Assembly (NCBI GenBank): GCA_000708835.1
Contig: DF237562.1
Location: 1 to 51,459, forward strand
From: Klebsormidium nitens
Lineage: Eukaryota > Plantae > Klebsormidiophyceae
Reading direction: 5' to 3'
DNA: 51,459 bases
The stretch's first letter is position 1, and every line of letters begins with the position of its first letter. The notes under the pieces were generated by a model, which was not told the DNA's origin, did not search any database, and was given only the letters and a program-made list of their open reading frames with translations. This document shows positions 1,471 to 27,900 of the stretch, one piece after another. A program made the position numbers and the translations under genes.

Positions 1471-2033
1471 AGAGGGCGTTGATACGCCACGTCATCAACC
1501 GGCCACTTTTTGCAGGGCCGAGTGCTCGGGGCACAAGCTCTGATACCAACTTCTTGGCGACAGAATACCACAAACCCATGCTTCGATGTCGCTGTGTGAC
1601 GTCAGGCGTTCCGGGTCCCAAGACGCCCACTTTAAATACTTCGCTTGGCGAAGATCTGCTGACGTCAGCAGTGTCGCAGACTGAGATTCGAATTCGAATT
1701 ACGGTTCGCGGCAGAGAACCGAAATTCTTCACTAATTTCAAACGTGAAGAATTTACAATTTCTTCGGGTCAGGTTTTAACACAGAGTCGACAAACCCGGC
1801 CACCTTCCGTGCTTGAATGACGACTGGAGCAGGCCACGAGAAACCCGTCAAAGAATGTAATAACCCACTAAAAAGAGCTTGAAAGCGCTGACAGTGATGG
1901 CCTATTCTCGCTCATGCATTGACTCCTGAGCTATATTCAATGCAACAATTCTGGGCAGGAATGTCGGCTGAAGCAGCTGCACTTCTCCCCTTCGTGACAC
2001 TGCTCTAGCTGGGTGGCAAGCCCATTCAGAGCT

Positions 2034-5000: not shown

Positions 5001-8000
5001 GTATCTGAAATGAAGTTCACCGTTCGGAGTTGCAACTGGATGCTGGGAAAGACTGCAGAAGCACCCTCGCCATTCAGACGGTGCCTCGAAACGGCTTTCA
5101 AATTGTCGTTTGGAAATGCATCCAAGTGATTGAAGATCCGATCCTTTCATCCAATCAAGGAAGACAACACTTCTTGCAAGACTCTGCTTCTCTGCACGAC
5201 ATTCCCACCGTATGATCGTTGGGCAGTCACATCCAAGGCCTACTCCTCGACGAGGCAAAGACAAGTGCCCTACAGACCTTGAGTGGAGCCTACTCTGCAC
5301 AGTTGCCTTCAAACCCCGCTTGCCTTTCCTGCAGGCAACGAGACGAAGCTGGGCATGAGCCGCGGCGCCACCCCGGTGAAGCTGGCCGCAACGGACGCCG
5401 TAATTGACCGGCTGACGGGCGCCATCTTCGCGTTCCAGATTTTGGTCGTTGCGGTCATGGGCGCCTCAGGGGACGTCCTCAAGGAGCGCCAGCGGCACCG
5501 GGTGAGACTGCGGAAGCATCAGCACAGCTCTAAAACCTTGCTTTTCCTAAAATCAGAGATTTTCCGAACCTGGAAATCTCACTCATTCCGAGCTTCGACC
5601 ATGATTTGAGTACAGGTGCAGCAATTACTGGGTTATCGGTCGGACCCCGTCGTTGGGTCGGAATCTGTTGGCCCATTGCGAAATCGCCGAGGTGATTGGT
5701 GATCTCAACAATTGTTCATCGGACAGTCTAGATCCGGCATACGGCACAGATTGAACTCCGGATCAGGTGGCTAGATGGCTCAGTAAGCAGTAGCTGGCGT
5801 CGTCCCCCGAAGACGATGGAACCGGTGGTTGGACCACGTGAAATCCACTTCGTTGTTTAGATGCCTTAGCTTGGCCATGGTTGCGGAATTTCAGACCTCA
5901 AAGGCTCTAAACATACTTGAAGCGGCTCCGGGAAGCTGCCGTTATGACACAGTGACACCCTCAATACTGCTCGGGCCAGCAGATTGGAGTCTCATCGTTT
6001 CGTGGCTTGGGACACGGTGCAGAGCCGACGTGTGGATTTCCTTCGCGCGTAGAATTTCGGTGGAACAGTAGTTTGAAACGCCGATTCATCTTTCCCTCTT
6101 CTCCCCTTTCGCAGCTGTGGTACCTGGAGTACCCCCGCCGCGAGCGCTGGTTCGACTTTTCGGTCATCCCGCTGCGCTTCGAGCTGCTGAGCTCCATCAT
6201 GATCCCCATCTCGCTCAAGGTGTGGCCCTCAATCCTTTGTTTCCGTCGACCCTTCTTTTGCTTCTCCGTTTTACCAGAGATTTGGATGAGAGCTCCGGTG
6301 TTGCAAACCAGGAAAAAACGAAGAGGAAAGCCAGTGTCTGGCACCTTGCCTTCGCCCCCCTTGGAATTTCGCTCTCTTTGAGATGGGACCGTCCGCTCAG
6401 ATTGTGTGCCCGTGAACTGAGGTCAATCAGCACTGATGCCAGGGCCCAAGCCCCGCTTGCGCTTCTCGGAGAATGCAATTTGTTCTCTCAGTTCCGAAAA
6501 GCAAACCCCGAAATCTGTACCCTCAGTTCCGAAACGCAAACCCCGAGAAGGGCAGCTCGCATCCGTACGCCTTGGCTTGTGAATTGGACGAAACACCAGG
6601 GTTTGGAAGCAAGTTTGTCGGAAGTGACTCGTCCGAGACTGCTTTTCATGTTTCAGTGTTGTGGGTTTTCTGCACACCTGACCCCGGCAAGCTCAATGGC
6701 GGCAACCTTACGCAGTTGCAGCAAAGAAGTCGGCAATCCTAAGCTTTGGCTCGAGGGTCTCGCTCAAGTCCCGTCAGTCGAAAAGCCCTCAATGCGCTGC
6801 AACTGTTTGGATGTCCGCAGGTGACGATGGATCTGGTGAAGGCGGCCTACTCCAAGTTCATCGACTGGGACCTCCAGCTGTATGACGCAGACACCGACAC
6901 GCCCGCGCGCGCCAGCAAGTGAGTCGCGCTTTCGTTTAGCGGTGTCAAATGATCAGAGAACTTCGTTGACAAGTGAAACAGGGACTAAGAGCTCGACACC
7001 TTCCTCGCTATGATATTCCTGGAAGTGTAGTGGACGAAAAGACACGGCTTCGCATCGTCAGTGAGAACATAGCAGCAGACCGATTTAGGCGCCATCCGGG
7101 AGTACGCAAATAGACGGATCGCTGTGTTGGGCTTGGTCCTGTCCGTAATTCATTGTTCAATTTCGTTCTTCTAGGCGCAGTTTGTGGCAGGCCGGAGCTC
7201 GTGAATTTCCGTTGACCATCCCGCGAGACGATCTCTGGGTTTGACTAGTAGCGACGAGCGGGTTTCGGAACGCTGGCCCAAGAATAAATAAGCGAGAAAC
7301 CGCTAGGAGAGAATTACGAGGGGAAATGGGTGCTCGGCCAAACGAGCATCTCGCAAGGCCTAGGACCGAGCCGATTGAGCTCTGAACGGCGGCCGTCGAA
7401 CGGCACCCTCGCGACGCAACAAAAAGTATACCAGCTGTGCTCCATCAGATAGCTCAGCACTCACAAGGCTTGACGCTTGTTGGATGCACAAGCTGTTCGC
7501 GTTTTGCAGCCGGGCAACCCGGAACCTACCGTCCAGCGTGCAAACCCCTGGGCATCGATCACGAGCGACTTGAGCCAATAATTGACTGGTTTGGAAACGT
7601 GTATCTCTGTGCGCAGCACGGGCATCCCCGAAGACCTGGGCCAGGTGCAGTACATTTTGACGGACAAGACGGGCACGCTGACGGAGAACGTAATGCTGCT
7701 CAAAAAGTGCGGTGTCCGCGGGCGGGCGTACGGAGAGACCACGGGAGACGTTGTGACGGGTGAGTGGGGCATGCACTTGGAAACCTTCCAGAAGCTGGGT
7801 TCTGCTTGCTGGGTTTCCCGAGATCCTTCCTGAATTTGAGCTTTAGATACAGTCTCGGATGAGCTGTTAAGAATCTCATGCTCAAGAAAAGCAGTCTGGC
7901 GACGAAAGCATGTAACAGCTGTCCAGTAGCCTTCCTGACAATTTTAAGGTTCAGTTTATTCAACGAAAAGCGGACCGCGAAATACAGTAGGACGGGCAAT

Positions 8001-11000
8001 CTGTTTTCGGGCACGTCAACCCTGCCTTTCAACGTCTCTTTGAACAAGTAAACGTCGGGGTTCTCATTGTGCAAAGTGTTGGTAAATCATCGTCAGGCTA
8101 CTCTCGATCCTCTGCAGACCCGGACCTCCGGCGCGCGCTCGAGCGCGCGGACTCAGCAGAGGCGCAGCTGGTGTTGGCGCTGGCGGTTTGCAACACGGTG
8201 GTACCTGTCCAGAAGCGGGGCGTGCGCAGCTTCAAGGTGGCGTCCCAAGACGAGCTGGCGTTCGTGAGCGCAGCGGCGGAGCTGGGGTTCACTCTGGCGA
8301 GCAGGGAGGGGCAGACGCTTGGTGAGGACGATGTTAAATTCTCCGTTTGATTGGAATCGAGGTCGAAACAAATGGAGGGCAATTGTCAAGCGTGACAGCG
8401 GACTGGGGACGGTAAGATCTCTGGGCGTTCAAGCAGGGAGGGACAGAAGCTAGGTGAGGCCGTTCCTCAATTGTGCATTGAGGGAATCGGACGTCTGTGA
8501 TTGCGGAACGACAACCAACTCGGCACGCTTTTAGATTCTGGGCGATCATGCAAGAAGGGACAGACGCTCGGTGAGGACAGTTTTCGCCTTGCGGATTGAA
8601 AAGACTGGACGTCAGTGCTTACGCACGACGATCGACTGGATCCAGCTTTTGAGCAGGAACGGGCGGACGCTCGTTCAGTGCGGATTCCGCGGGCAGTGAT
8701 CGGTGGTTTGTGAGTGGTTTGTGAGTGCTTTGTCTGAAAGGAGACACACGAGTCTCCGGGAGAACTTCGACCGTCAGAAGAATCTGAAGACCGTTCTGGG
8801 CAAGCAAGCTTCTTCCGAGCACGACCATTTTTCGGAGAGAGCGGTTTCTTTGCGAGGAAGCGAGACGGCCTTCGTAGACTGAACCCCATGTTAGCAAGGA
8901 TTCTCTTCTAAAGGAAAGATCCGACGCCTGGGTCTGAAGGAAGAAGTGTTCGCATCGTGAAGCTAACGTCAGCGACGCATGCAGCGCCAACCGCCGTTGC
9001 AATCCTGAGGCCTCCTTCTTTCGTTCGTTGGTTTTTATCTGGACTCTTCGTCGTTGTTTGACAGAGGGGACGCCCACCTCCTGGAGACGCTGGAGGTTTC
9101 GCTTGAGTGAAAGCAAAAGGTTAACTACAAGAACTTTCAACGTTTTTAGCTCCAAATACGAGCCTCCTATCTGTTTTTGACAGTTGTCGCGCTAGGTGAA
9201 GAGAGTGCCCGCTTCGAGCTGCTTGAGACGCTGGAGTTTTCGCCGGAGCGCAAGCGCATGAGCGTGGTGGTGCGCGAGCGGGCGTCGGGGCGGCTGAAGC
9301 TGTACACCAAAGGCGCGGACGAGACCATCTTCCCCAGGCTGCGAACAGGTTAAGCAACGGTGCTGTTGTTTCCAGATGTCGACCAGTACGGGTGCCTCAG
9401 CGGCTGTAGCGGAGTTTTTGAGTGTACATACGCATTTCGTCGGCGGAGGGTCTGCAGCTTTTACAGATGGACCGGTCGCTGATACAGAACATGATTCGCG
9501 GACCTCCTCTGGCGATGCGGGTTTGTCAAAGGCGAAACCCCTCCGCAATCAGGTCCTCAGTGACACGGGGTTTGGCTTTCTTGCGAACTGAAACTACGGA
9601 AAGACGTTCCTCACCCGGCCATATAACAGCTGTTTTTAAAAATTGCCGACCCTCAACTGTGTGCGACTTCCTGAGAGTTGCCCATCTGCTTAAAAGCCCA
9701 TTCTTCTACTGGAGCACTTGCAAAAGTCATACGACGAAAGTGCACAGTCATTGAGCGGTATTACACGAGGTAGCGTGGTAGCTTGGTAAGTCGAGGTAAG
9801 CCTCGGTAGCTCGGTAAGCCTCGATAGCTCCAGTAACTTGCCGAAATTTGGCGTAAGTCCTGTCCCTACCGCAACTCACCGGGCTCACCGCATCGTGGTT
9901 GGTGCGGCAAGCGGGGTAAGCACGGCAGTTTCCTGCCTGGAAAAACGTCAAGCTACCGCACTGTACCGCGCCCCATGTAACTTGCGGTAGCTCGATAGCT
10001 CCAAAAGCTGGAGCTACTACGACTTACCGCGCCCATGTGACTTGGCTCATTGACCTTGTTTGAACAGGTGAGGAGACGGCCTCGACGGCCGCGCTGCTGG
10101 AGGACTATGCGCGGCATGGACTGCGAACCATGGTGGTGGCGGCGCGCAGCGTTGACGAGGACGAGTATGCGGAGTGGGCGGGCAAAATGCGAGAGGCACG
10201 GGTGGCGCTCCAAGACAGAGACGTGAGTGCTTTTTACTTCACAGCTTGTTTGAAGCAGCCTGCCGCTTTCAGTGGAGACCTTAGTGTAGGTATCCGGTTC
10301 GCTGCTAAGTGACATTCAACCAGAGAAGGTGACACACAAACCGGCACAATGCGCGGACAATGCTGTATTTGGGGCCGATTGAAAGTTTCAGGTGGAGAGG
10401 AAGGTCGTGGGAGAGATTTGCGAAGTATGGGAAGCAGTGGGGGTGACTGAGAGAAACAAGGCTGGGGGCGTAAGTTCCGGCTTAGAGAAGATCTTTCCTG
10501 CTCTACTTTCTTTGACGGGCATCGCGAACCGTGCCGACCGAGTCGTCTATGACGAGCGATCTTTCACTTTCCGCGCTCTTCCACTTTCGATCACGTCAGA
10601 CTTGCAGAACACCGGACGCTGATGAAATTTGCATCTGCTTCGGTGAACCAGTTTCGACGTGCGTGGACTTAAGCGCAATTTGAGCCGCTCACAAAGCACC
10701 AAGTCTCAATGCGCTGGTTCGTCCTGCTTCAGGAGCGGACGGCGGAGGTGGCTTCGCTGTTGGAGACGCGGCTCGAGCTGCTGGGGTGCACTGCGATCGA
10801 GGACAAGTTGCAAGAGGGCGTGCCGGAAACCATTGCCCTGCTGCGGCGCGCGGGGATCCGGTTCTTCATGCTCACGGGAGACCGCCATTCTACTGCCGTG
10901 CAGATCGCCAAGGCGTGTGGGCTGGCTGGCTCAGGTGAAGATGCGAAACTTCGCCGCATGTTTGCTCCTTTTGCAGAGAGCGTTTGTAAGGGCAAGTGGA

Positions 11001-14000
11001 ACGATGGGGAAGAAGCGTGCATCCTGTTGGCAGGCTCACTGAGATAGAGATAGAAGGAGAGGGGATATTAGGCTTCCTTCTCGGGTGCTGTGCTTCAGAT
11101 TCCTCGACCCTTGTAAGTTGTTGGGGTCTTCGATGGGTTAGCAAGGACTGTGGGTTTGCAGGCTCCGATTAGCTATGCTTAGACGAAGGAAGAAGCGGAA
11201 GGACCACGGGGGGCTCTTGCGAGGCGATGCTGCATTCGGCTTCCCTAAGCTTCACTTCACTAAGAACACTTTCTAATATATATTCGGCTGCGGACGTCGC
11301 AATCTTCGAACGCGTTTCCGGGGTTGGCAGGCTCGATCAACATTGTCGATCGATCATGCTGATCCGACTCGACTTTACAAACATTGCAGGTTCTGCGCAT
11401 CAGATATTACGGGTACAGGGCACATCTCCGCACGAAGTGGGCGACAGCTTGCTGCGCATACTGTCCCTGCTTAAGGAAAACACCCGGGTAAGGCGCCGAG
11501 AAACCCTAATCCTAAAACACTGTTAGTTTCGACACTTAGGATCAGTAGCTTGATCCTGCGTGTCACTTGGCCTCAGTTGCTTGCACCCACTTTGTTCCGA
11601 TGATATGCAGACCAGGGCCGCTTTGTCCAAAGTAGACCGACTTCAACAGGCCGACGTCTGATTTAACGAGCGGCGCTCGTGCTCTACGCCGTCCGTCTCC
11701 TTCCGCTCTCCTTCTGTCCACGTCTGACCGCTACAAACGACCTTCATTGTCCAACAATAAAACAACAAAACCCTGAACTCGAGACGCCCAGAAGTTGTAT
11801 TCCCATGTTCAGTACGCCTATACATCCGTAGCAGGCAGCCATCTTTCAACATTGCTTCGAACTACCTTGTTCGTCCAACAATCAAATAATAAACTCCTGC
11901 AATCGAGCCGCCCAGAATCTGTATCTCCATTTTCACCACGCATCTACCTCCGTAGCGGGCACTCACCTTTTAACAATGCTGTCGCTGCAGGATCGGACGC
12001 TTCTGGTCGAGGGTTGGGTGTTGGACATCGCATTGCAGCACCACGCGGACGCTTTTGCGGACATTTGCCGCCTGGTCCGGACCGCCATCTTCTGCCGCGC
12101 GGCGCCCATCCAAAAAGCGCAGGTCCGTGAGAACGGTCCCTTCGGTAGAGACTTAGCATGGCTGCGTGGGTCACACGACGAGACTGCTAATTCTGTGGCT
12201 TCCCTTTGGACGCGAATTGGTTGCAGATCTGACGATAACCGACAACATAGAGGCTCTACCATCAAGTGAACCTATTTGCTGATGGTATGATGTCTGGGAA
12301 TCTGCAACCAACTCTGCAAACACCTCGCTTCGGGTCGCTGCTTATTGTTAGTTCTTTGACAACCGAAGTCCTTTTGAGTGGAAGAGGCAGTTGAAAACGG
12401 AGACACCTGTGTTCGCGCCGACGTGCAAGCTTTGTAGGATGCAAGAACCGCCCACCTGGCCTGTTCTTCGAATCGCGCCTTTAAGTAACAATTAGTCCGT
12501 GAAAGTCTAACTCGCAAATCTGTATTCCGGATCGGATTTCCGATAAAGACTAAACTCTACACACAAAATCCCCTTTTCGGCATGCTATTGTGCCGTCGTG
12601 AAGCGTTCTGTACGCAGACGCTGGTCATGAGACCCTGCGACGAACATAACAATCCCAAAGCCTTACAACGCTGGTTGCAGACAAACTTTTCAAAACGCTG
12701 AAAGAGCAAAACCCGAAACCAGAACCACTCGAAACTCTCCTTGCAGCTTGTTGCCGTCGTGAAGGGCTTCGGTGTACGTACGTTAGCGATCGGCGATGGC
12801 GCCAATGACGTGCGCATGATCCAGGAGGCCCACGTGGGGGTGGGAATCAGCGGAAGGGAGGGCCTGCAAGCGGCGCGCTCTGCCGACTACAGCATCGCCA
12901 GTGAGGCCCTCTGCTTTGAACTGACGGTTCGACATTTCTTGGAACCTGAGGGCTCATATGAGAGCGTCTAGAAGTGCCCTGCTAAGCTTTGAGCCCAGAC
13001 TCTTTCTGGATTTTGTCAACGCGTCGTTTGACTCTATAGTTTTGTCTCAGAAAAAGGGAATTGACCTGAACGTGGTTCCTTTTTGTGGTGGCCATCCCCG
13101 GCAAAGGGTCCGCCATGCTCAACGCAGACGATTTTCTCGATGCTGCTCATAGTTAGTCTCCGCTGGCAGCTGCTTCGGTCCGAATCTTGCGTACAGTCAC
13201 TACTGTAGAAGGAGCGTCAAAAGCGCTGCCGTGACGTGTCCATGGCTGTCCCGGTGGTTGCTTCTCGATGTCATTAGTCTAACGCTCTTGCTCCGGTTGG
13301 TTTTGGGCAGAGTTCCGGTACCTGGCCCGCCTGATCCTGGTTCACGGCCGTCACTCGTACCTCTGCACCGCTTTCGTCGCGCAGTACTCCATCTACAAGT
13401 CGCTCGCGCTCTGTTTTGTACAGATCATGTGAGCCTTTTCGATCCACTTTTCGCACGGTCGGAGTTCTACTTCGTCCCAATCGAAGCTTTTCTGCTCTTT
13501 GAACACGGGAGGAGTTCTTATCGACAAACTGAGATGCAGTCAGTGGATGGAGCACGCTAAGGCAGATTTCTGGTCCACTTGCTTCTGGTCCAGTTTGAAG
13601 GCCTCTTATCTTCCGCCGTCGTGCAAGCCTCAAGGCGGGCCTTCCCGAGGTCTAGCGTTTCCGGCCGTTCTCCGCTTTTTGAACACACGAAGCCAGCCCC
13701 TCACAACTCGTCACGAGCCTGCCTCATTTACTGCCACCCGTGCAAGAACAACTTCCTAACCCGACCGTCCCTTGTGCCCCTTCCTGACTCCCCGCCCCGT
13801 CTAACTCCAGCCCTGCTAACGTCACCCATCGTGACGTCACGCTTCGCTCCTTGCAGGTTCGCGTTCTTCTCCGGGGTTGCCGGGACGAGCCTGTTCAACT
13901 CGTTCAGCCTGACCACGTACAACGTGCTCGACACCAGCCTGCCCGTCCTGGCTTACGTCCTCAACCGGGACCTCGCTGACGTCACGGTGACGCAGCACCC

Positions 14001-15888
14001 GGAGCTCATGCAAGACGCCCAGCAGAGCAGGTGGGAAGGTTTTTGTATGGATTGCAGGATCGTGTTGACTGTCTCTGCGTACCGACTTCTTGCTCTGAGT
14101 TACCGTAGTATAAAGTGGTCTGACCGTTTCACGGCTCTATTACGATCAGTGTCGTAGACCTGGAACGTGAGGCTCGATAAGATTGTGCCTTTCAGCCAAA
14201 GCGACGGACAGCATGTAGAGACTGAAATGCATTGCTCAGCTTGAGACTGCCAAGGTGGTGAGGCGAGTTGAAAGCGTGTTTTGCGTGCGAGCCCGCTGCG
14301 CCTTCGCGTATAGTGCAGATCGTCGGGAGGGCTGTGATACCTTGCGGTTCCATAAGTAGCACTTGGAGCTCGTTCTTTTAGCGGAATCTCATCAATGCGG
14401 AAGCTCAGAATCGGAGCCCTCAAGCAGAGGAAGCGGCTCGACCAGAATCGGAGGCGGAAGTCTGAGCGAAACTGGAAAATTAGCCGTTATTTGCGGGCAG
14501 TCGTGGTACGGTGTTTCAAGCAGCGATCAGAGGCCAGTCTCGTCACGGCCCATAAAATCACAGCCCAGCACACCGCACATTACCGAGCTGCGCTCTCTCT
14601 CTTTCTGCGCAGGCTGCTGAGCATCGAGACATTCACGCACTGGTTCGCGCGCGCGCTCTTCCACGCTTGCGCGGTGGTCATGCTGACGTCAGGCGCCTAC
14701 TTCCTGACGGGCGCCAGTCTGGAGGAAGCGGCGCTGGCGGCCTTCTCCGCGTGCGTCTGGGTCGTCACTCTAGTTGTCGCCGTTGAGACCCAGTGAGCAC
14801 CGCAGATTGTTCCGTTGCTTTTTACGGAAGACTTAGGGTTAATATACTTGAGAGTTGTGTTTTGCTTGGGCTCGAGCGTCATCAGGGCCAGTAAAATGGT
14901 TGCCGTTTGGCCGTGTCAACACGTGTACTCTTCACCCGCAGATTCTCGGCTCACCTAATCAATTCAGCAGCTGACGTCCTCTCTAACACGAGCCTCGCTA
15001 ACGTTAGAGGCTCCATCCTTTCGCAGCTCCTTCACGGCCTACCAACACGTGGCGCTCTGGGGCACGGTGCTGACGTTCTACGGCGTCAGCCTGTTCGCAA
15101 GCGGGTACCTGTGGAGCGGTATGTACCGGGTGGTCGGGCGCATGCTGTTTAATCCTCGCTACGGGCTGCTCCAACTGGTGAGCGGCTCAGGAGTCCTGCT
15201 TTTGCTTTTGGCTTTGTTCCAACAAGGGAACCGTCATCATGTTTCTGATTGAGCGGTGAGAAGGGCTCGGCCTTTGTGTCCAAGACCAGTACTGTGGTCT
15301 ACCTGAAATTCGTTGCATTCGACCTGGATCTTCCAAAATCTTTGAAAAGGCTGTAGTCTTGCCAAGGACTTGCAAAAGGTGGGCCGCCTCTGCTAGACAA
15401 GAGTGCAGCTGTTTCTTGAAACGGTGTGAAATGTCAGGAGCGGGGTCGATTTTTTCCAGCGGGAGCCTTTCTTGTTCTCCGATCGTGCGACAGCGAGCCA
15501 CTGACATCTCGGATCGCCTTCTCGGGAAACTTTGGTGCGTTGTGCGTTGTCATGAGGTGCAATCCTTTTGGGGTTTCCGCGTTGGCATATGGGCCTGTCG
15601 CACTTTCGCAAGAGCTGCTTCATACGTTCAAGATACTCACACTCTGGCGAACCTGTTGTGCAGCTGATATGTGTGGTCAGCCTGGGGCCCATTCTGGTGA
15701 CCAAGTACTACCGCTTCTTCTACCACCCTAGCCTGAGTGACAAGCTCCTACAGCTGGAAAAAGAGAGGACTGACCCCGCGGACGCTCTTGCCGAGTCCGG
15801 GACCATGTACAGCCGGCTCCTGGGCACCTCCGCTTCGCAGAATGAGTTGAGTAGACAGCGGTTGATATCAGAAACTGAGCAGCTCTAG
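2034..15888 (+). CDS. ALA2: P4-type phospholipid-transporting ATPase (flippase), ALA2-like, 21 exons
   Basis: Exons 2034-2188, 2979-3192, 3664-3780, 4027-4122, 4572-4746, 5335-5501, 6115-6219, 6821-6918, 7617-7759, 8118-8321, 9184-9348, 10067-10222, 10733-10934, 11390-11487, 11991-12122, 12747-12900, 13311-13428, 13857-14030, 14613-14792, 15027-15177, 15664-15888. All introns are GT-AG and the frame is continuous. Motifs: [22 protein letters not shown] (P4-type DGET), [40 protein letters not shown]. Confidence 0.95.
6487..6546. repeat. Two-copy 35-bp tandem repeat in ALA2 intron 7
   Basis: ctcagttccgaaaagcaaaccccga at 6487 and ctcagttccgaaacgcaaaccccga at 6522. Confidence 0.85.
8283..8690 (+). 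repeat. Four degenerate tandem copies of the ALA2 exon 10 end plus splice donor
   Basis: gcagggaggggcagacgcttg|gtgagg (GT 8322), gcagggagggacagaagctag|gtgagg (8454), gaagggacagacgctcg|gtgagg (8571) and a decayed gcaggaacgggcggacgctcgttcag (about 8652-8678). Confidence 0.75.
9755..10046. repeat. Array of GGTAAGC/GGTAGC motifs in both orientations in ALA2 intron 11; possible non-autonomous DNA transposon
   Basis: Forward ggtag(c)/ggtaag(c) words at 9769-9830 and reverse ctaccgc/ctcaccg/cttaccgc words at 9865-10030. Flanked by TCATTGA at 9748-9754 and 10047-10053. No convincing TIR. Confidence 0.5.
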
Positions 15889-16700: not shown

Positions 16701-16870
16701 GCCAGACGGATCATATGTGGTTACAATGATCCACCTGATCTCCAACCTAGGACTTGAATTGGGGGCCGTTCCGACTGAAATAGATTTACTGTGACCATCA
16801 AAACATACCCAAAAGGTCACAAGAGAAACAAACAATAAGGAGGAAATACAGCATAACCTAAGCGTGATCA

Positions 16871-16918
16871 TGGAGCTGACAGGACTCGAACCTGCATCTC
16901 TCAGCAAACTGCGAATCG
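16871..16918 (-). tRNA. Orphan (distal) tRNA-Ala-like 3' half: extended stem strand, variable loop, T-arm and acceptor 3' strand
   Basis: Minus strand reads CGAT-T-CGCAGTTTGCTGA-GAGAT-GCAGG-TTCGAGT-CCTGT-CAGCTCC-A. It has a TTCGA T-loop, U70 and A73, and no encoded CCA. No adjacent 5' half was found. Confidence 0.7.
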
Positions 16919-17676
16919 GGGCTTGATTGTGCTCCTTGTGTGAGCTTCTCTCTTGGTATAGAACAGCACAGGATAACAGATTGATGTGTATGTCTTGCTC
17001 AAACACCAACTGGTCTGGCTCATGTCAAGCTTTCACTGCATATTGCTAGGAAAACAATGAACCAGCTTGTGTGCTTTGACTAAGTTCCTGTTTCTCGGTG
17101 TTCGAGAACTAGTGTTCATAATTCTGTCACAATTCTGTTATCTCCCGCAAACTTGGACCAACTTTGCCGTTGATACCAATGGCGACTTTGAGATTCGCCT
17201 GAAAGTTTCCTTTCTGTTACTTGCTGAAAGAGCACTGGTCTGCATCTGCTGCTGACCTTGCCAATTTCTGTTTGTTGGTACATCTGGCAAGATCTGTATT
17301 CCTGCCTTCGAGCGACATTTTTGGTGCATTTTGAAGCAGTCTTGCTTCAGCTCTGGTTGCCATCGTTTTGTGCACCCCTTGACGTTGTTCTCAACAAGGT
17401 GACGATTCAGTCTGGACAGCTGAAAGGCTTGCGACGCATGGAATGAGCAATCAGAAACCTCAACAGACACCAACAAACTCGAAATACCAAAAAGGACTCA
17501 AGAACGAGGAACACTACTACACGAAAATCAAGGACACAAAAAACACAACATATCAAAGGGACGCAGACTGGGTACACATACGACCACCAGAAAAAGCTTA
17601 AGACCAAACAACTTAGAACCACACACAGCAAGCGACCAACAAACCTCCCTACTGTCCAGACGCTCTGTGAACATTT

Positions 17677-18405
17677 TGGAGCTGGCGGGGTTCGAACCCG
17701 CATCTCTCAGCAACTGCGCATCGTGTCTGGTTGCTGAACCGCCACTGCAGGCAGGATAATTGGAACAAAGCTCAGCTAGCATGAGCATCTGCTTCCTTAA
17801 TCAGAGCGAAAGGAAGACCCCGGCCGGAGCGCAGGGGTCATCCAGCCCTAGCCATCAATGTTGGCATGAAGCTCGTCAGCGACACCACCAAATTGAGTCC
17901 ATGGCAATCTTCGGCAGTCAAGTCGGTAAGCCAATGCCTTTGCGGGATCGCTCTTGTCATGCGCCGCACAGATTTGCATGCGCATTGGCCACTGACAACG
18001 TGCTGAGTCAGCACCTGCAGACATGGAGATGGACTGCAGGGATCATATGCAACGGTGGGATAGGGTCGGGCCAAACCGTAGAAGCATGCAGATTTGCAGA
18101 TTGCTGGCAGGTAGCAAGTTTAGCTATTTCCAGTCGTTTTGCCTGGGTTGTACACACCCTTCGGCGACTCGGTTGTGACCATCGGGATCAAAGGCACGGT
18201 AGCATGTCATTGCTAGCGTGTTCTCCCCATCAGGTGAGCCATTTGAGCGGAAGCTGCCAGAATTCATGTCGCAATCTGCATTGTTCAACATACGGAAAGG
18301 TCGACCATCACCACAAGCGGAGCCTCTTGGGCAGTCTGGCAGGCCGAAAGATGTAGCCGTCACGATCGCAGTTGCTTGGCGCTTTACCAATTAAGCTACA
18401 GCCCC
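17677..18405 (-). ncRNA. 729-nt tRNA-Ala-mimic RNA: the 5' and 3' ends form a complete tRNA body and the anticodon loop is replaced by a about 635-nt insert
   Basis: 5' half 18405-18361: GGGGCTG-TA-GCTT-AATTGGTA-AAGC-G-CCA-AGCAACTGCG-ATCGTG. 3' half 17725-17677: CACGAT-G-CGCAGTTGCT-GA-GAGAT-GCGGG-TTCGAAC-CCCGC-CAGCTCC-A. This gives a 7-bp acceptor with G3:U70, a 4-bp D-stem, a 5-bp T-stem and a 10+6-bp closing helix. U8, A14, A15:U48, G18, G19, A21, U54, U55, C56 and A58 are all present. Confidence 0.75.
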
Positions 18406-19034
18406 TTTACTTGGAACGAACATATAGAATAATCAAGAAGCAAAATGCAGCAAAAAGAATACAAGACCTTTCAGAAAGCGACTAAAATAACGGGCCTACT
18501 CAAGATCAATCAAACTCACCCTATCCAGAGTAAACAATTGAGATAAAACGTCCTTGGTCAGGGAACAAGCTGGGGGTGTCCCGGAAAACCCACAGAAACA
18601 AACAGGCTCATCCAACCCCGTAGAGTACCCGGCAGTCCATTAATGAACAACCACTCTGCAAAAGCAACACAACAAACCGTCACAACACTCCCTTAAAGCG
18701 GCGCCAGGTTCCCAGCTGGGACACCCCGTCGGATGTGCTGCAGTTGGCAAGGCGAAATGTTGAAATGTTGTCAAACACTAGGTTGTGGATGACTTGTCAG
18801 GTCCGGTCTGCAAGTATGAAGAAAGGCAGATTGCGAGTCAGAACAACTTTGGCTAAAATAAGTAAACCATGAATCATAAGTGAACCATGAATCGATGAGT
18901 GGATTGATTTATTCGATTCAGCCACGAGTACCGATACCCCAAGCAATGATCGATGTGAGCCATGCAATCTGACGAAAAGTGGAAGGAAGAAGAGCGATTG
19001 CTGCCAAGTGAACAGACAAGAAAAAAAAGCACAC

Positions 19035-19100: not shown

Positions 19101-19217
19101 CCGATAGAAGCTCACAGATGAGAATGGAGTTAGAGATATCAGGTTCCCAAGCCCAAACAAAACTGCCTCCAACCTTGCATCCACGAACCATGCGAGAGAA
19201 ACACGTGAGAGTGAAGA

Positions 19218-19297
19218 TGGGCTCAGAAGGATCCATTGGTTGTATGCATCACAGCTGCACTCATATAAACTGCTAAAGCAGAGTTCATCATGGCCCA
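19218..19297 (-). ncRNA. Box C/D snoRNA, snR41/snoR41Y/U62-like, predicted guide for the 18S Am541-equivalent
   Basis: 5-bp terminal stem TGGGC/GCCCA, box C ATGATGA (19291-19285), C'-like GTGATGC and box D CTGA (19226-19223). The guide CCAATGGATCCT is complementary to plant-type 18S AGGAUCCAUUGG. The D+5 rule lands on the A after GAGG (yeast Am541). Confidence 0.85.
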
Positions 19298-19432
19298 CTG
19301 CACATTTACAGTACCAAAAAAGCTTTCTGTAAAGACTGGCTGGTGCTATTGAAGAACCACCTGACACAAGTCCTGACCGTATCTCACAAAAACAAAAATA
19401 TCACAAACATGCACACAGTATTAGCTCTTGAT

Positions 19433-19746: not shown

Positions 19747-19834
19747 CGCTCACTCAGGGCTTCTTCGAAGCAATTGAGTATCCACAGTGGTGTTCAGAGG
19801 ATTGACAGATTCTAAAATCTCATCATAGTGAGCG
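19747..19834 (-). ncRNA. Box C/D snoRNA, snoR14/SNORD110-like, predicted guide for the 18S U1231 (yeast numbering; human Um1288) equivalent
   Basis: Perfect 7-bp terminal stem CGCTCAC/GTGAGCG, box C ATGATGA (19826-19820), D' CTGA (19797-19794) and D CTGA (19757-19754). The 14-nt guide AATCTGTCAATCCT is complementary to 18S AGGAUUGACAGAUU. D'+5 lands on the first U. Confidence 0.9.
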
Positions 19835-20169: not shown

Positions 20170-20251
20170 CTGCAAATGCAAGACCCAAATGGCATCCGCA
20201 CCAGAGCTCCCGGGGCTGCCAGGAAGAACAGGCAACACTCCCTGGCCCATC
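20170..20251 (-). ncRNA. Probable internal exon of a spliced non-coding snoRNA host transcript
   Basis: Minus-strand acceptor tttattgcag| at 20252 and donor |gtgagc at 20169. A further donor |gtgagtg lies near 20779. No recognisable protein in any frame. Confidence 0.4.
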
Positions 20252-20330: not shown

Positions 20331-21476
20331 TGATAAAGGCCCAAGCGGCAGTGAAAGCAGGAGGGGAAGATAGCGAAGAGTGCTTGGAAAGCAGACTCCG
20401 AAGAAAGAAGAAGTGTCACCGTTACCAAAAGAAGTGAATTTCTTTTGGTACCAGCAGGGGAAAACCCCCTGCAGCCCTTTCTTTCATCCAAGAGTACGAA
20501 GGAGCAGACGCTTAGGCTAAACATTGATGAAAACCTGCGCTTCAAATGGTACAATGCAGGAGCTGACCTGATCTAGTGTCATCGTTCACATGATTATGAG
20601 CGAAAATCTATGAACAAGAGAAGGCATCCAGGTTTGGTTACACCAACTCCCTGAACATGAGCTTGACATGACTTGGTGGCAAGTGAGCAGATGTAGGACG
20701 GGCTGACAACTTGTTCCAACCTCAAGCATATCATGGTGCATTTGCAACAGCATAAGATGAGAATGACAAATCTCACTCACCTTCAAACTGCTCTTGCAGC
20801 CAAACAGCTCATTAGCTAACCAATCGGACATGAATACCACTTGATGGTTCCGCAGGGAAGCTGAACTGTACTAATCTGACAGTGAAAGCTCAGTGTTGCA
20901 TAGCTTCAAATAGCGCCATAGCGCCAATGCAGTGGCATTGGCAATTTGGCATCGACGAAGTCCAGGCTAGGACCTATAACCGAAGTTCGAACCTCCTTCC
21001 TCAGGGAGGAAGTTCCTGCTTGAAGTTGTAAGTTGCAAGGTTGAAGGACTCAGGAGTTCGAATGGTCTTCAAATCTACGGATACCTATGATAGGGGCGAA
21101 AATACAGTAGAGGCTTTTTGAGCCGTCGATGCAAGTCCTCTTCTGATCGGACGGCCTCAGAAAGGGTGAAGCTTTGCTCTAAACTACCGTACTGAACAGA
21201 TTCATCCTCCTCCCGGCCTAGTTTCGTCTCCTCGGAATGCTTATAGGTTGCCGCGGTTTTGTCAAACCTGTAAAGCGCGTCGAAATTTCGAAGCAAACGA
21301 TGCTCCTTGACCACTTTCGTTAAGGGGCTCCCACAAGTTCAAGGTGCCGCTTTGAAGCTAACCCGGACGAGATTCTAAACCCGCATGCTTCTATCGATTC
21401 GGACCAGGGGATCGCATCCCGGCTAATACAAATTCAGGCGGTAATTCCTCAACGAACAAGGAAGGAGACGGGCAGA

Positions 21477-21484
21477 TAGGGTTT
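21477..21484 (-). promoter_or_regulatory. Telo-box (AAACCCTA) in the divergent snoRNA-host/HDA15 promoter
   Basis: tagggttt on the plus strand. A second copy is at 21869-21876. Confidence 0.5.
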
Positions 21485-21868
21485 TCTTCCTTGCCGAACA
21501 CCATTTTCGGAAGGAAGGGCTCCTGACGAGCTGTCTTTCCTGCCCAAAGAGTCCCTTTCTGTCTTGGAAGCCCCTGCCACTGCTGGCAAAGGACTTGTGC
21601 CTTGTATCAGCAACCTTTACAACCTCAACAATAGGTTGTGGTTGTTTCCTCCTGTGTGCTTTTGTTCACAGCTTGTCCGTTACCACTCAGGATAGCTGGC
21701 AGAAATTTTGAAAAAATTTCTCCCTGATCCTTCGCTGAGTTGCTCCACAGAGGAACTTGGCAGGGTGTTCTTCTGGTGCCTCTGCAGCTCTGAAAAATCT
21801 TACACGCCGTTTGGAGGCCTGTACAGACCCAGGCGATTTTGCTCACCAATTTTCGCGCACCCGAAAAG

Positions 21869-21876
21869 TAGGGTTT
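21869..21876 (-). promoter_or_regulatory. Telo-box (AAACCCTA) 67 bp upstream of the HDA15-like ATG
   Basis: tagggttt on the plus strand. Confidence 0.5.
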
Positions 21877-21942
21877 AGTTTTAAAAATCATCCGAGGCCT
21901 CTTTTACTTGGATCACTTGTGGTAAAGGTCAGCTAAGACACT

Positions 21943-24900
21943 ATGGAGGATGATTCAGCTGCAGGGCAAGCGGATCTGCTCTTCCCGGGGATGCCGAGCA
22001 GCGGGGATGACCCCTCTGACGATGACCATGATCTGACTGCTGCAAACTCAGAGGAAGAGGACTCAGAGGATGAGGGCCTGGATGAGGAGGAGGACGAGCT
22101 GTCAGCTCATAATGTCAGGAAGGCCCTCAAGAGGCCCCGCGAGGAGTCCTCAGGGGACGAGGATGAAGAGGGGCCCGGTAATGATCTGCTGGACATGCCC
22201 CCTCGGAAGAGGGGCCTGGATGACATCATGAGGGAGTTTGGGGAGGACGATGGCCTGGATGATGATGAGGATGATGACAGCGACGAGGATGACGAGGAGT
22301 GGACCCCCTGGGGCAAGCCCTCCTGGGTCTGCGTCAACTGCACTTGCTCCACCGGGGATGAGTACACCTTCTGCTCGGTAAGCGTGTGGTTAAGACTCAG
22401 CATCTCTTTGGAGGCATGTTACCTGCGGAAGCGAGTTTTCGAGGACAGGAAGACTCGCCTGAGGACACTGCCTTGCAAGAGCCTTCATGGCACCTCAGAT
22501 GGAGTTCTGCTTGCTTTCAATGCTTGCATACCAGCTCAAAGTTCCAATAACTGCTGTGACACTGCAATGTGTCAAGACAGAAAATGATCTGGGGCAATGC
22601 TGCGTGTGACAGCTGAAAAGGTGCAAGGCTAGGGTTCCTTGTGGTCCTTCTTCCAATGGGTTGTCTGCCTTTTCTTTCCAGCTGTATTAGGGTCTGTGGT
22701 GCAGTGACAACTGTTGAGTTCTGCTGTCAATCCTATCGCTGCTGAGCTGATAATCTATTCTACACGAAATTGACTGTAACACACTTTTCTCCATGCATTT
22801 GCCCCTTCACCCCTCCCAAGGAACCCCAGACACTCCCTGAGCTGCAAGGGGACAGCTCAGCATTGTCAGATATACGATCTACATTTCGAGCCTTGCAGCT
22901 GTCTTTGATCATTGCTGTGCAAGGGATCATCTGCATCAAGAACTTCCTGCTTTGGGGATCTTCACCAACCACGATCGCTGTCTGCAGTTCTGTGGAGAGC
23001 ACCGTCGGTCGGGCATCCTTCAGCGGGGCTTCATGGCCAGCCCTGACATCCCCGGGGACGCTGGGGTGGCTGAAGATGGCCCCCTGTATGCGGCAGAACC
23101 CGTGCAGCTGTCTGAGGAGGAGCTACGAGCGGCTACTGCCATTGGAACTGACGACAAGATGCTCCTGCATTTTGAGGTGAGCCCCCCCTAGCCCCCCTGG
23201 GGCTTAACAATTGTTGTGTCCGTTGCCTGGGGCTCTTCTATCCTCTTGACAGGGTCTTCTTTATAAGACAACGCTCAACTTTTGTGTAATTTTCTTTTCC
23301 CCCAACTTCATGTTTTGCAATTGGGGGCCTGGACTGCCACCTTCCTTGCCCATCGACTCATCCAAAAACCAGGCACTTCTTTAGACGTCTAACTCTGGCA
23401 TCTTGCTTTCCAGGGGAAGCCAAGCCCCCACCCGGAGAGGCCCGATCGGCTGAGGGCAATTGTCGCAGGGCTTGTTCATGCTGGTGAGTTAAGCAGTCCA
23501 GAAAGCCTTTGAAAAGCCTCCTAAAAGCCCCCATGAAAAGCCCCCCTTAAAAAGCCCCCTTGAAAAGCCCCCTTGAAAAGTCCCCCCTGGAAGTTGCCTT
23601 CTCTTCTGGGATGGATGTTTGTCTGGATTAGTGTGGACATGCTGGTCTCATTTTAGGCTTTCTGATTTATAGTTTATAAATTCAAACGTCTTTTTATGAC
23701 AGCTGTCCCCGTTCTAATCTACACATCCTGACTTTGCATCTTCGTTCCAATGGTGTGCAGGCCTGTTCCCCAACCGCTGCGTCCCCTTCCCCACAAGAGA
23801 AGCTGAACAATCGGCCATTGAGTCGGTCAGTTTCTACCCCTCTTTTCGCCCCCAACTATTTTGCCGGCAATAGGTTTCCACACTGCCAAGTAGCTTCCTG
23901 CGTGAGCATTACGTACTGATGATTGGGGCCTGGTCTTTTAAACTTGACATTGATTGCAGAGTAAGCAGGATTGTCCTGTTGTTTGACGCTTCTCAAAGTT
24001 GCCCCCACATTGTCATGCAGGTTCACACAAGTCATCATGTTGATGAAGTGGAGTTGACTGCCGGCTGTGACCTCAAGTAAGACATTTGCTCATAAGCCCG
24101 AGACGCTCCCATGCTCGTGGGAAGCTGGGGCAGCTGTTCAAGGTAGTGTAAGATAGAGCAGGTGTCTCAATCATCATTGAAGATACATACAGAGGTGGTA
24201 ACCTGCCCTACAACAGTGATTTGCAACCAGTCATTTTGCCCCGCACAACTGACCAGGATGTAGCTTGTCCTTCTGAAGGGCAAGCCTCAGAAGTTTGCTA
24301 AGCTCTGCTGGCAGCAATCAATTCTGGAGCCAATGTCTGCTGATATTCCTCAAGCCTTGACAGCTGTCCTATATTCCCGTAGGTACTCCACCTCGTACAC
24401 TTATGCCCCAAGCCTTGACAGCTGTCCTTCACTTCTGCAGGTACTTCACCTCAGACACGTACGCCAATGCCAACACCTGCCAGGCCGCCCGGCTCGCAGC
24501 AGGGATCTCGCTCGACATGGCAGCTGCTATTGCCTCCGGGAAGCTCAAGAACGGAGTAGCGGTCGTCCGCCCCCCTGGTCATCACGCAGAGTCGGAGGCC
24601 ATCATGGGCTTCTGCCTGCACAATAACGCGGCGGTCGCTGCCAAGGCCGCGCAGGCAGCCGGAGCGAAGAAGATCCTCATTGTGGACTGGGTGAGAACTC
24701 TCACTTGGATTGGCTGAAGTGTCCTGGTTGGTCGTGACCACTTCGAACATCCCATCTGCACTGAGATCCCCGCCGTAGATTGAAGGCTTTGTGTCAGCCA
24801 GATGTTCAGGAAATGATCATACTTTGTGTTGAGCGACATGTGCCCTTTCCTAAAGAGCTTTTCTCAAAACAACCTTTCCGTCTTTGCAGGACGTCCATCA

Positions 24901-27900
24901 CGGAAACGGCACCCAGGAGATCTTTGAAGGCGATCCTTCGGTGAGGAGCTTGCCCCTTATCCAAGTTGCTGAGTTCGATCCCGTTTCCGTTGTTGCTGGA
25001 TTCATTTGCTGCCCTCAAGGTTTGCAGCCGGAGTGCGCTTGCTGTGATCGGCACAACAAGAGGTCTGTACCTATCTATGAACAGCTTCGGATCGTTTTCA
25101 TTGCGCTGAAGACCGCTCCAAATCAAAGATTCATCTTCTATGCAGGTGCTGTACGTTTCTTTGCACCGTCACGAGGCGGGCCACTTCTACCCGGGCACTG
25201 GGGGTGTCTACGAAGTAGGGTCGGGCCAAGGGGCGGGCTACTCGGTTAACATACCATGGCCGTGTGGAAATATCGGGGATTCAGATTACATTGCGGCCTT
25301 CACGCGCATCATTCTACCCCTTGGTGAGCCCTTTGAGAGCTTTTTATTAAGAACACGTCAAGAAGTGTTTGCTGTGCTGGGCTGAACATGTTTGGCTTCT
25401 CGTTGCGTGAAAGGCCGTTCGTGTATGTACTTAGCCCTGTCGGTTGTATCTTGATTCGATCTTTCAAGAGTTAAGGTCTGCTGGAAGTGGGCAGTAAAAA
25501 GTTGTTCTGAACGCACCCTCAGGTCGGTCTCCCATCTGGGATCGTACTTCCGCTAATCACTAGCATCCATCTTCGATTGCAGCTTACCAGTTTGCCCCGG
25601 ACATGACCATCATCTCAGCAGGCTTTGACGCGGCTGCGGGCGATCCCCTGGGGGGATGTCAAGTGAGTCCCTTCCGTCCAAGCCCTGTCAACCTATGTCA
25701 TCTTTTCCTGAAGCGCTTTCAACTGGTCACGGGAGTCAGGCCTTTGTCTTGAGCACCTGCTTTCTCCCTTCCAATTGTTTCTTCAAATTATGGTGGTCGG
25801 GTTTCATGGTGGTCGGTATGGCTCGTCTCATTCGTTCACAACTGGCACAGATGTGACTCTCGACCTGAAGTGTCCTTTGAAGGACAAAGTGCTGATTGAT
25901 CTCTCCCCTTCCCGCAGGTGTCGCCAGCTGGCTATGCGCATATGACTTCCCTCTTGAAGCCCCTGGCCCAAGGCCGGATGCTCATCGTGCTCGAGGGGGG
26001 CTACAACCTCCGCTCCATCTCGTCATCTTTAGCGGCATGCACTCAGGTGAGCTTGACTTCTGGATGTTCTAGCAATCGCTTTCAGCCGGGCTGAGACCGA
26101 GTCGCAAGGGATTGTCGTGCAAGCAGCCCCTACTCTCTTCTAAGCTTACTTCAGCCAGGTCGTTGCCTGCATTTCTGCTATTGTTGTTGTTGTGACTCGG
26201 ATCTGGATCTGAGTCCGGGATGAGACTCCGAAGTCTCTCAAACATCTTTCTGCTACGTGAATGTCGAGTCTGCAGTGCCTTCTGTCTTGTTCGATATCAG
26301 TGCCCCTCTTGACAGCTGTCCTGCTTCTTGTTCTGTCTGGTTCGATATGGAGTTTTCACCCGCCCCCTCCTCCCCGCAGGTTCTGTTGGGCGAGGCCCCC
26401 CCCGCGCTGCCGGCCGGGCTCCAGCCTAGCGAGGCGGGGCTGGCCGTGATTGCGGAGGTGAGCGCAGTGCAGGCGCGCTACTGGACGGTGCTGGGCCACC
26501 AGGAGATCCAGGTGCACCCCATCATGTCCGGGGAGGAGGAGGACGAGCTCGACTCGCTGCAAGACGCCAAGGCGCTCCCGCGGCTCACCAGCAACGGGGA
26601 CCATGCCGGTGAGTGCCGCCCCCGAGCTCGTGTGCTGAGATTTGTTTGACGGATTTTGGCTGGTGGGTTTTGTTGACGGGTTTGGGGTGACGAGTTGCGG
26701 TTATGAACGGGAAGACAGCGGGAAGAGAGCAGTACGAAGGGGCCCAGAAAGGACTAGCTTTTGTTGCAAAGCCCGAAAGAAGCTAAGGAGCCAGTTCCTA
26801 AAAGCCAAGCCGGAGTACTTTGCCCCACTGCTATGCCGGAGTATACTCCCCTCGGCTTCGGTACGAAGTATCTCCCCAGCTTCTATATAAAAACCGCTTG
26901 TATGAACGCGGCCTTTTACAATCCCCTAACGAAAGTACGTCAGAAGCTTCACGTGGCCTGTGATACTGGCAGTCTTTTCTTTCGGCACCGCACTGCTAGC
27001 TCGCACACGCCCCAGCCCCAAGCCCGGCCACTCACCCCCCTCTCTGCTTTCCCTCCCCAGGTGACGCTGGGGAGGAGGCCCTGGGGCCGCACAAATATTG
27101 GCTACCCCCGTCTGCCCCGTCTAGCCTCCCCTCTCCTAGCTACCCCCCCGGAGCAGCATCCCCTCACAGCTTCACGCGCATCCCTTCTCCACGTCACCCA
27201 AGCTTGGAGCCCCTCCCTTCCGAGCCCGTCAGCGTCCCCACTTTCACCCAACCGGGACCCCCCCGCCCGCAACCAAACCCCCTGCCGCCAGCTCATCGCC
27301 CGCCGCAAGTCACGGGGATGCCGCCCCCCAGCTACGTGGCATCCCCTATACACCAACCGTTCTACTACCCGTCCCCCGCGCATCCCTCGAGTTACCACCA
27401 TCCCTCCCCCGCCCATCCTTCCACATATCACCACCCGTCCCCCAGCAGGGCCGCCATGCTGACGTCACCCCAGCACCCGTCGCAGCACGGGGCGGCCCCC
27501 GCGCACCACCCCTCCCCCGCTTACCAGAACCACCCGCAGTCCATTTTCCACCCCCCCACCGCGTCGCCGCAGCACCATTGTGTACCATATGTAACATCTA
27601 CGGTCCACTTGAAAGCGAGCGCCCCTACGGGGCCCCCTACTGTGGCGCCTCTCATCCCCCGCCCGTTGAACCCTCAGCAAAAGCGGCCCGAAGTTGCACG
27701 GTCCCCTTCGGTGCAGCCCTCTTCAACTTCTCAGCCCGCGGAAACGATGAAAAGATCAGCCTCGGTTACGCGTCTCTCGCAAGCCTCCCCGCCTTCAGAC
27801 ATAGCACTCCCCGGCCCTGCCCTTGCGCAGCCGCCAGCTGTCGTTTCAGCGCAGCCGTCAATTGTTCTTTCAGCCCAGCCGTCAACAGTCCCCGCAGAGC

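Follow-up and report, generated by a model that had tools for sequence, protein, structure and literature searches.

What kind of RNA arises where the two halves of a tRNA body lie 635 nt apart on the same strand of a nuclear gene? The question is raised by a locus of Klebsormidium nitens (Klebsormidiophyceae) on contig DF237562.1 of GenBank assembly GCA_000708835.1, the 51,459 nt of which (positions 1 to 51,459 of the forward strand) form the window analyzed here. The element in question spans 729 nt of the minus strand, from 18405 to 17677, and a preliminary description, made from the letters alone, had called it a tRNA-Ala-shaped clasp around a long insert. That observation is confirmed; according to RNA contigs, the clasp belongs to the last exon of a host gene that is spliced and non-coding. 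The clasp consists of three parts:

18361-18405, minus strand: 5' half of the clasp, with the acceptor strand GGGGCTG, U8, the D arm (GCTT/AATTGGTA/AAGC), G26, the stem top CCA and the 5' strands of helices 1 and 2
17726-18360, minus strand: cargo of 635 nt, with a higher GC content than the flanks and without a T4 run
17677-17725, minus strand: first 3' half, with the 3' strands of helices 2 and 1, a bulged G at 17719, GAG, AGAT, the T arm, CAGCTCC and A73

Read directly, the 5' half runs GGGGCTG-TA-GCTT-AATTGGTA-AAGC-G from 18405 to 18380, and the 3' half ends at 17677 with AGAT-GCGGG-TTCGAAC-CCCGC-CAGCTCC-A. Once paired, the halves form a 7-bp acceptor stem with G3:U70, next to which stands A73. 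The D arm has a 4-bp stem and an 8-nt loop with A14, A15, G18, G19 and A21, and is preceded by U8 and followed by G26; the T arm has a perfect 5-bp stem and the loop TTCGAAC (U54, U55, C56 and A58), and the A15:U48 pair is present. After G26, the anticodon arm begins weakly (C-G, C·A and A·G). It then continues as a perfect 10-bp helix, helix 1 (AGCAACTGCG/CGCAGTTGCT, 18376-18367 with 17718-17709), and, beyond one bulged G, as the 6-bp helix 2 (ATCGTG/CACGAT), whose strands enclose the 635 nt. The minimum free energy (MFE) fold of the 729 nt retains the acceptor stem, the T arm and the 10+6-bp helix (z = -3.0). Every nucleotide that the preliminary description had named for the tRNA body was found in place, as was the 10+6-bp helix that replaces the anticodon loop; its variable loop of 5 nt has to be corrected to 4 nt in the register that pairs C27 with G43.

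The probability that such a structure arises by chance was evaluated with a strict two-half descriptor. It demanded a 7-bp acceptor stem, U8, a Watson-Crick D stem with A..GG..A in its loop and a Watson-Crick T stem with TTCRA, the halves being no more than 3 kb apart. The window held a single match, the clasp itself, and 300 shuffled sequences held none; the expected number of chance matches was zero both for the 5' 25-mer and for the 3' pattern. Thus, the clasp is beyond chance. Its 5' half is unique in the window even at three mismatches.

tRNA finders with intron-length limits had been expected to overlook the element, and standard searches did so. Default ARAGORN and Rfam at gathering thresholds found no match in the window, and the Rfam tRNA model remained silent even at E = 10. 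At that threshold, Rfam returned a local match to transfer-messenger RNA (tmRNA) at 17674-17711, with 16.4 bits against a gathering score of 47 bits. The expectation failed for the long-intron mode of ARAGORN (-i0,3000), in which a tRNA-Ala(cgc) with a 651-nt intron was the sole default-threshold call in the window. This mode yields 0.13 false calls per shuffled window, and the call requires a distortion of the body, with the D stem shifted and a variable loop of 7 nt. For annotation, clasp loci escape standard tRNA finders, and long-intron modes mislabel them as tRNA-Ala(CGC).

We next asked how the clasp is expressed. The RNA evidence consists of assembled contigs from four RNA runs, which come from three studies and carry two organism labels. 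Three minus-strand GT..AG joints, found in all four runs, define a spliced host gene with the following features:

20780-21010, minus strand: upstream exon of the host gene, the first exon seen, joined to the other exons by a contig of run X7
20170-20250, minus strand: internal exon of 81 nt, with the joints 20250/20780 and 18807/20170 in all four runs
16851-18807, minus strand: terminal exon, with the GT..AG joint 20170/18807 in four of four runs
19750-19831, minus strand: intronic box C/D small nucleolar RNA (snoRNA) with ATGATGA, CTGA and an 8-bp terminal stem, and weak Rfam matches of SNORD110/snoU61 type
19215-19300, minus strand: intronic box C/D snoRNA, snoR41-like, with ATGATGA, CTGA and a 6-bp terminal stem (Rfam snoR41, 33 bits, E = 0.008)

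The terminal exon includes the clasp, preceded by 402 nt and followed by about 800 nt, and is covered by contigs at 17692-18813 and 16851-17721. One contig of run X7 (record 23) joins 21010-20780, 20250-20170 and 18807-17699, that is, the spliced exons, the 5' half and the whole cargo. The depth of the terminal exon is about that of the spliced exons and 3 to 10 times that of the intron; in run X12, for example, it was 155 upstream of the clasp, 144 over the 5' half and cargo and 139 downstream, while the spliced exons had 116 and the intron 22. Since the depth does not change between the clasp and the sequence on either side of it, the uncut host transcript is the main assembled species. A contig that joins spliced exons to the clasp, together with exon-level depth, also means that a stand-alone RNA polymerase III (Pol III) gene is not needed to account for the RNA.

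The spliced host RNA has no ATG-initiated open reading frame (ORF) longer than 98 amino acids, and the gene is therefore classified as non-coding. Both C/D snoRNAs were confirmed by a strict motif search and by sequence reading, and both lie inside the 1,362-nt intron on the strand of the host. The host is a non-coding, spliced snoRNA host gene that carries the clasp in its terminal exon. Weaker C/D-like motifs occur at other places in its introns. A B-box-like GGTTCGAAC at 20985-20993 (minus strand), at the 5' end of the first host exon seen and beside a CCTCC...GGAGG hairpin, is probably due to chance.

The cargo matched no RNA family in Rfam at E = 10 and no C/D snoRNA in the strict motif search, and none of the four RNA runs contained a contig with a joint indicative of a spliceosomal intron in it. 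By itself, it folds at z = -2.3. An antisense ORF of 198 amino acids (17760-18356, plus strand) spans nearly the whole cargo and is unusually long for chance. A coding cargo was rejected nonetheless, given the junk-like composition of this ORF and the lack of a Pfam match or a homologue.

Members of a clasp family were found among the RNA contigs. Paralog contigs of 1.7 to 2.1 kb (records 3, 10 and 18) match 18361-18408 with at most one mismatch and also match 17677-17728. Their loose ends place the points of divergence at 18408/18407, 17676, 18361 and 17728, so that the paralogs part exactly at G1-3, right after A73 and at the borders of the cargo. Cargo and flanks are unrelated between paralogs, and the halves are near-identical, the extension helix included. 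This pattern fits purifying selection on the clasp halves. Real tRNAs do not have the extension helix. Gene conversion from true tRNA genes was rejected as a source of the similarity, because this foreign helix is conserved among the paralogs. In another paralog, the loose end on the 5' side has the sequence ..CCAAGCA-CTGCGA.. and its 3' counterpart ..CGCAG-TGCTGAG..; if both come from one molecule, they fit a helix 1 shortened by one A-U pair, with the loss on both strands.

The terminal exon contains one more part of a clasp:

16871-16921, minus strand: orphan second 3' half, with the same acceptor strand and A73 and the T arm GCAGG-TTCGAGT-CCTGT

It sits about 760 nt downstream of the first 3' half, and the host contigs end about 20 nt beyond it. 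Homology to the first 3' half is confined to the stretch from helix 2 through A73, with one extra U in helix 1. The three differences in the T stem all preserve pairing: G51:C63 has become A51:U63, a double compensatory change, and G49:C65 has become G49:U65. Conservation of pairing in the T stem points to selection on the RNA fold. In mini-constructs closed on the single 5' half, the second 3' half reached -40.5 kcal/mol, compared with -49.6 kcal/mol for the first. A search for a 5'-half relic between the two 3' halves found none, the best local alignment being no better than those of shuffled sequences. The second 3' half may be either the relic of a lost tandem neighbor or an alternative partner that would give a clasp of 1,535 nt.

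We favor, with a probability of roughly 45%, the reading that the clasp belongs to a tRNA(Ala)-derived family, is expressed within an RNA polymerase II (Pol II) host and is releasable by tRNA end-processing enzymes. The family part of this reading follows from expressed paralogs with conserved halves and unrelated cargo. In this element, the top half of the tRNA persists together with its D arm, and the anticodon loop is exchanged for a long helix that opens into a copy-specific cargo, here of 635 nt. RNase P or PRORP, RNase Z, the CCA-adding enzyme and alanyl-tRNA synthetase (AlaRS) recognize their substrates by the acceptor/T-arm half and the elbow, and can dispense with the anticodon arm. 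A folded clasp would therefore be expected to be cut at 18405 and 17677, its paired halves presenting the acceptor/T-arm/elbow module to RNase P or PRORP, RNase Z and the CCA-adding enzyme. Cleavage at both places would release an RNA of about 729 nt, and an alternative 3' cut at 16871, by way of the second 3' half, one of about 1,535 nt. Locked in a tRNA-like helix, the ends of the released RNA would be protected from exonucleases, and the same cuts would sever the host exons. Cuts of this kind in longer transcripts have precedents in mascRNA, in the tRNA-snoRNA dicistrons of plants and in mitochondrial t-elements. What we infer from established enzymology is that the clasp is cut and CCA-tailed, that the released RNA is stable and that it may be charged with alanine. 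A wider proposal is possible but more doubtful: a whole family of nuclear tRNA-clasped RNAs may be cut by RNase P and RNase Z from Pol II hosts (with short members as Pol III genes of their own) and CCA-tailed, members with G3:U70 and A73 may be alanylated, and two 3' halves may give two products.

Several observations weigh against the favored reading. Assembled contigs give no view of transcript ends at 18405, 17677 or 16871, and depth is even upstream of, within and downstream of the clasp. Given even depth across the borders, either no more than part of the transcript is cut or the libraries miss the product, unlike the situation in MALAT1. By sequence reading, without a model, no A-rich tract or U-rich triple-helix element was recognized before the 5' cut site, where just AAA precedes G1. 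The conservation of the halves was judged from short contig matches and 30-nt loose ends rather than from full paralog sequences. The expressed paralog with the shortened helix ends in CAGCCCC-C, that is, with C70 and C73 in place of U70 and A73. Alanine identity thus does not extend to the whole clasp family, which weakens the case for alanylation as a conserved function. Contig ends at 18405 and near 17700 were considered as evidence of cleavage and rejected: the paralogs share sequence up to the same borders, and assemblies break there, which accounts for the contig breaks at 17692-17721 and 18378-18408.

Conservation outside this genome adds to the same side of the balance. Exact-pattern scans of a metagenome collection with the 5' 25-mer and the 3' 22-mer gave no match, nor did word-based protein searches with the cargo ORF and the ORFs of the flippase and neighboring exons. 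The flippase in question is a P4-type phospholipid flippase encoded by a large multi-exon gene at about 1998-15885 (plus strand; PhoLip_ATPase_C and Hydrolase domains), convergent with the host gene. A representative search with one of its exons recovered two fragments, of 95% and 88% identity. The latter lies on a 54.6-kb metagenome contig (L002/L003) with which the window is collinear over the full length of the P4-ATPase gene; the contig of the other (L001) was too short. Downstream of the flippase, the 54.6-kb contig has a CRAL_TRIO gene and a long terminal repeat (LTR) retroelement in place of the snoRNA host gene, and neither host gene, snoRNAs nor tRNA halves were found there. The clasp locus is thus not conserved at this place in that relative, and the metagenome, protein-word and representative searches found no orthologue of it. 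The LTR retrotransposon of the relative, at 1-1420 of L003 (plus strand), encodes an integrase and a chromodomain.

Among 185,579 prokaryotic genomes, the 5' 25-mer was found in one, the metagenome-assembled genome of a CPR bacterium (Peregrinibacteria), where it is part of an unusual tRNA. This match is regarded as a coincidence. The tRNA (L004, 6427-6503, plus strand) has the exact 25-nt 5' half, the GGGGCTG/CAGCTCC acceptor, G3:U70 and A73, despite which ARAGORN labels it tRNA-Ser(cga). An organellar or bacterial origin of the clasp, such as a chloroplast trnA with a group II intron, was rejected because the context is a spliced nuclear gene; the clasp body is also presumably unlike that of plastid trnA.

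Could the locus instead be a tRNA gene of a more familiar kind? It has the body, the tertiary nucleotides and the G3:U70 pair of a canonical nuclear tRNA-Ala. It lacks a 5-bp anticodon stem and a 7-nt U33 loop with an alanine anticodon at a fixed distance, a short intron at 37/38 (the insert is 635 to 651 nt) and a close Pol III terminator, the first T run being 82 nt downstream. An ordinary intron-containing tRNA had been dismissed in the preliminary description, and rightly so: a cut at 37/38 leaves the loop CAACUGG with A33, the Rfam tRNA model and default ARAGORN are silent, and there is no bulge-helix-bulge motif of the archaeal or red-algal type, since a single 1-nt bulge is found rather than two 3-nt bulges around a 4-bp helix. 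The long-intron reading of ARAGORN, in which a true tRNA-Ala(CGC) gene would be interrupted by a giant intron of 651 nt away from the canonical site, is very improbable in our estimate. Joining CAACT to CGCAG would give the 5-bp stem AGCAA/UUGCU and the loop CUCGCAG with U33, CGC and A37, and the call is the sole one in the window. In addition, about 34% of the tRNA genes of K. nitens have introns according to a 2026 review (PMC13578239). The same review credits most streptophyte algae with canonical 37/38 introns only and does not mention giant inserts (PMC13578239). The stem would also be stacked on three further positions, which makes the anticodon arm 3 bp too long, the D stem would have to shift next to a 7-nt variable loop, and the cuts would fall inside a perfect helix, away from 37/38 and outside any bulge-helix-bulge. 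The false-call rate of the ARAGORN mode further lowers the value of its call, and no contig of the locus without cargo occurs in the four RNA runs. Still harder to sustain is a tRNA-Ala gene interrupted by a terminal-inverted-repeat (TIR) DNA transposon. In its favor is a possible reading of the borders as GCG|ATCGTG...CACGAT|GCG, with a 3-bp target duplication and 6-bp inverted repeats. Such GCG and inverted-repeat borders are readable at the clasp copy alone, another paralog being without an inverted repeat at the cargo ends. Neither the window nor the RNA contigs contain a second copy of the cargo, which has no transposase-like ORF. What the paralogs share is the halves, whereas members of a transposon family would share the insert, and removal of the insert would leave an 8-nt loop in an over-long stem and no tRNA. 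A tRNA-derived short interspersed nuclear element (SINE) was rejected, because its head would be split and the 3' end is a matching acceptor strand with a T arm. The possibility of a SINE or transposable-element head, which the preliminary description had raised against itself, is thus not borne out, the insert not being the shared part. A stand-alone Pol III gene, with TFIIIC bound to A and B boxes about 690 nt apart and a transcript that starts shortly before 18405 and reaches the T5 at 17595-17591, is improbable as well. The Pol III details listed in the preliminary description are all present, namely CAA at -8, a TATA-like AT-rich stretch from -17 to -31, no T4 run within the 729 nt and a T5 82 nt downstream; the A box is intact and the B box perfect. 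As an argument for Pol III, the absence of T4 runs does not stand, because it has P = 0.18 from composition alone. There is no terminator of T4 or longer within 80 nt of the 3' end, the regions upstream of the paralogs are unrelated, and the flanks of the clasp are rich in T runs yet clearly transcribed. The clasp is contiguous with spliced Pol II exons at equal depth, and one contig contains both, contrary to the claim of an independent gene. Promoters of the tRNA type normally tolerate far less than a spacing of about 690 nt between the A and B boxes.

Two further explanations dispense with cleavage. The clasp may be an inert relic, a copied tRNA-Ala-derived pseudo-element in an exon of a fast-evolving non-coding host, neither cut nor used. 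We consider this unlikely. In its favor, depth is equal across the clasp and its flanks, uncut contigs are present, the second 3' half has no 5' half of its own, the locus is missing from the syntenic place in the relative, and U70 and A73 are lost in one paralog. Against it, the tRNA-defining positions are intact in both halves, the halves are near-identical among paralogs whose cargo and flanks cannot be aligned, and every change in the T stem preserves pairing. Gene conversion from true tRNA genes offers no explanation, given that the conservation includes the extension helix. The other explanation, to which we assign little weight, is a cis-acting element that functions uncut, either as an RNA fold that binds tRNA-handling proteins and affects localization or turnover of the host, or as an insulator-like TFIIIC site in the DNA. 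The dominance of the uncut form among the contigs and the presence of two perfect or near-perfect B boxes speak for it. A role at the DNA level leaves the acceptor complementarity, the compensatory T-stem change and the long helix unexplained.

On the far side of the host gene, a divergent gene runs from 21943 to about 28000 (plus strand) and has an acidic N-terminal exon and a zinc-finger-like CxxC motif; a weak match to a histone-deacetylase domain lies within it at 24884-25246. This gene and the host gene probably share a bidirectional promoter region at about 21050-21900.

How does a tRNA-derived clasp releasable from a Pol II host compare with known systems? Full-text literature searches found no description of a nuclear RNA of this kind, in agreement with the preliminary description, and the clasp looks like an undescribed tRNA-derived RNA module. 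It is known already that tRNA-like folds serve as cut marks (mascRNA, t-elements and tRNA-snoRNA genes) and that bacterial tmRNA is closed end to end by such a clasp. We found no earlier account of a nuclear RNA in eukaryotes that encloses hundreds of bases in a complete tRNA body built from its own two ends.

The mascRNA and menRNA modules of MALAT1 and MEN-beta resemble the clasp in being tRNA-like folds in Pol II non-coding transcripts that RNase P, RNase Z and the CCA-adding enzyme are able to recognize. In mascRNA, a contiguous cloverleaf of about 60 nt stands at the 3' end, preceded by a triple-helix element and an A-rich tract. The halves of the clasp are 635 nt apart, neither upstream element is present, and the RNA downstream of the clasp is as abundant as that upstream. 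Split, permuted and intron-containing tRNA genes of archaea, Cyanidioschyzon and prasinophytes likewise have separated halves and a long helix near the anticodon region. They carry a bulge-helix-bulge motif and result in a normal anticodon arm, and the clasp has neither.

Plant tRNA-snoRNA dicistrons (plant dicistronic tRNA-snoRNA genes were reportedly described by Kruszka et al. in 2003, cited in PMC13578239) and mitochondrial t-elements share with the clasp the use of co-transcribed tRNA-like structures as RNase P and RNase Z cut sites, and the dicistrons also share a link with snoRNA expression units. Those systems rely on an ordinary tRNA in one piece with a Pol III promoter, or belong to organellar transcripts. 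At the clasp locus, by contrast, an intron of a Pol II host carries the snoRNAs, and the terminal exon contains a tRNA body split by cargo. The locus has the characteristics of a snoRNA host gene: it is spliced, has intronic C/D snoRNAs on the same strand and lacks a long ORF.

In topology, the parallel proposed for the clasp was bacterial tmRNA, the ends of which pair into an Ala-type domain with G3:U70 and close a large internal domain. The clasp has the same end-to-end arrangement, and to this extent the likeness holds. At the level of sequence models it does not: the tmRNA model matched the 3' half alone and far below its gathering score, and the ARAGORN tmRNA search of the window returned no genes. 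In contrast to the clasp, tmRNA has no full D arm, carries a tag reading frame and pseudoknots and works with SmpB, and one clasp paralog is without U70 and A73. The engineered tRNA scaffold has the identical layout of a tRNA body, an extended anticodon stem and a cargo. With the cargo placed in the anticodon stem, such scaffolds are correctly processed at their ends and protected from nucleases. They are artificial and expressed in bacteria, whereas the clasp is a natural nuclear locus with putative processing. If the clasp is cut out and tailed, it would represent a new route by which stable non-coding RNAs with defined ends are made from Pol II transcripts, and a natural precedent for the scaffold trick. 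If a family of tRNA-clasped RNAs exists, it would constitute a eukaryotic nuclear counterpart of the tmRNA topology and a natural tRNA scaffold.

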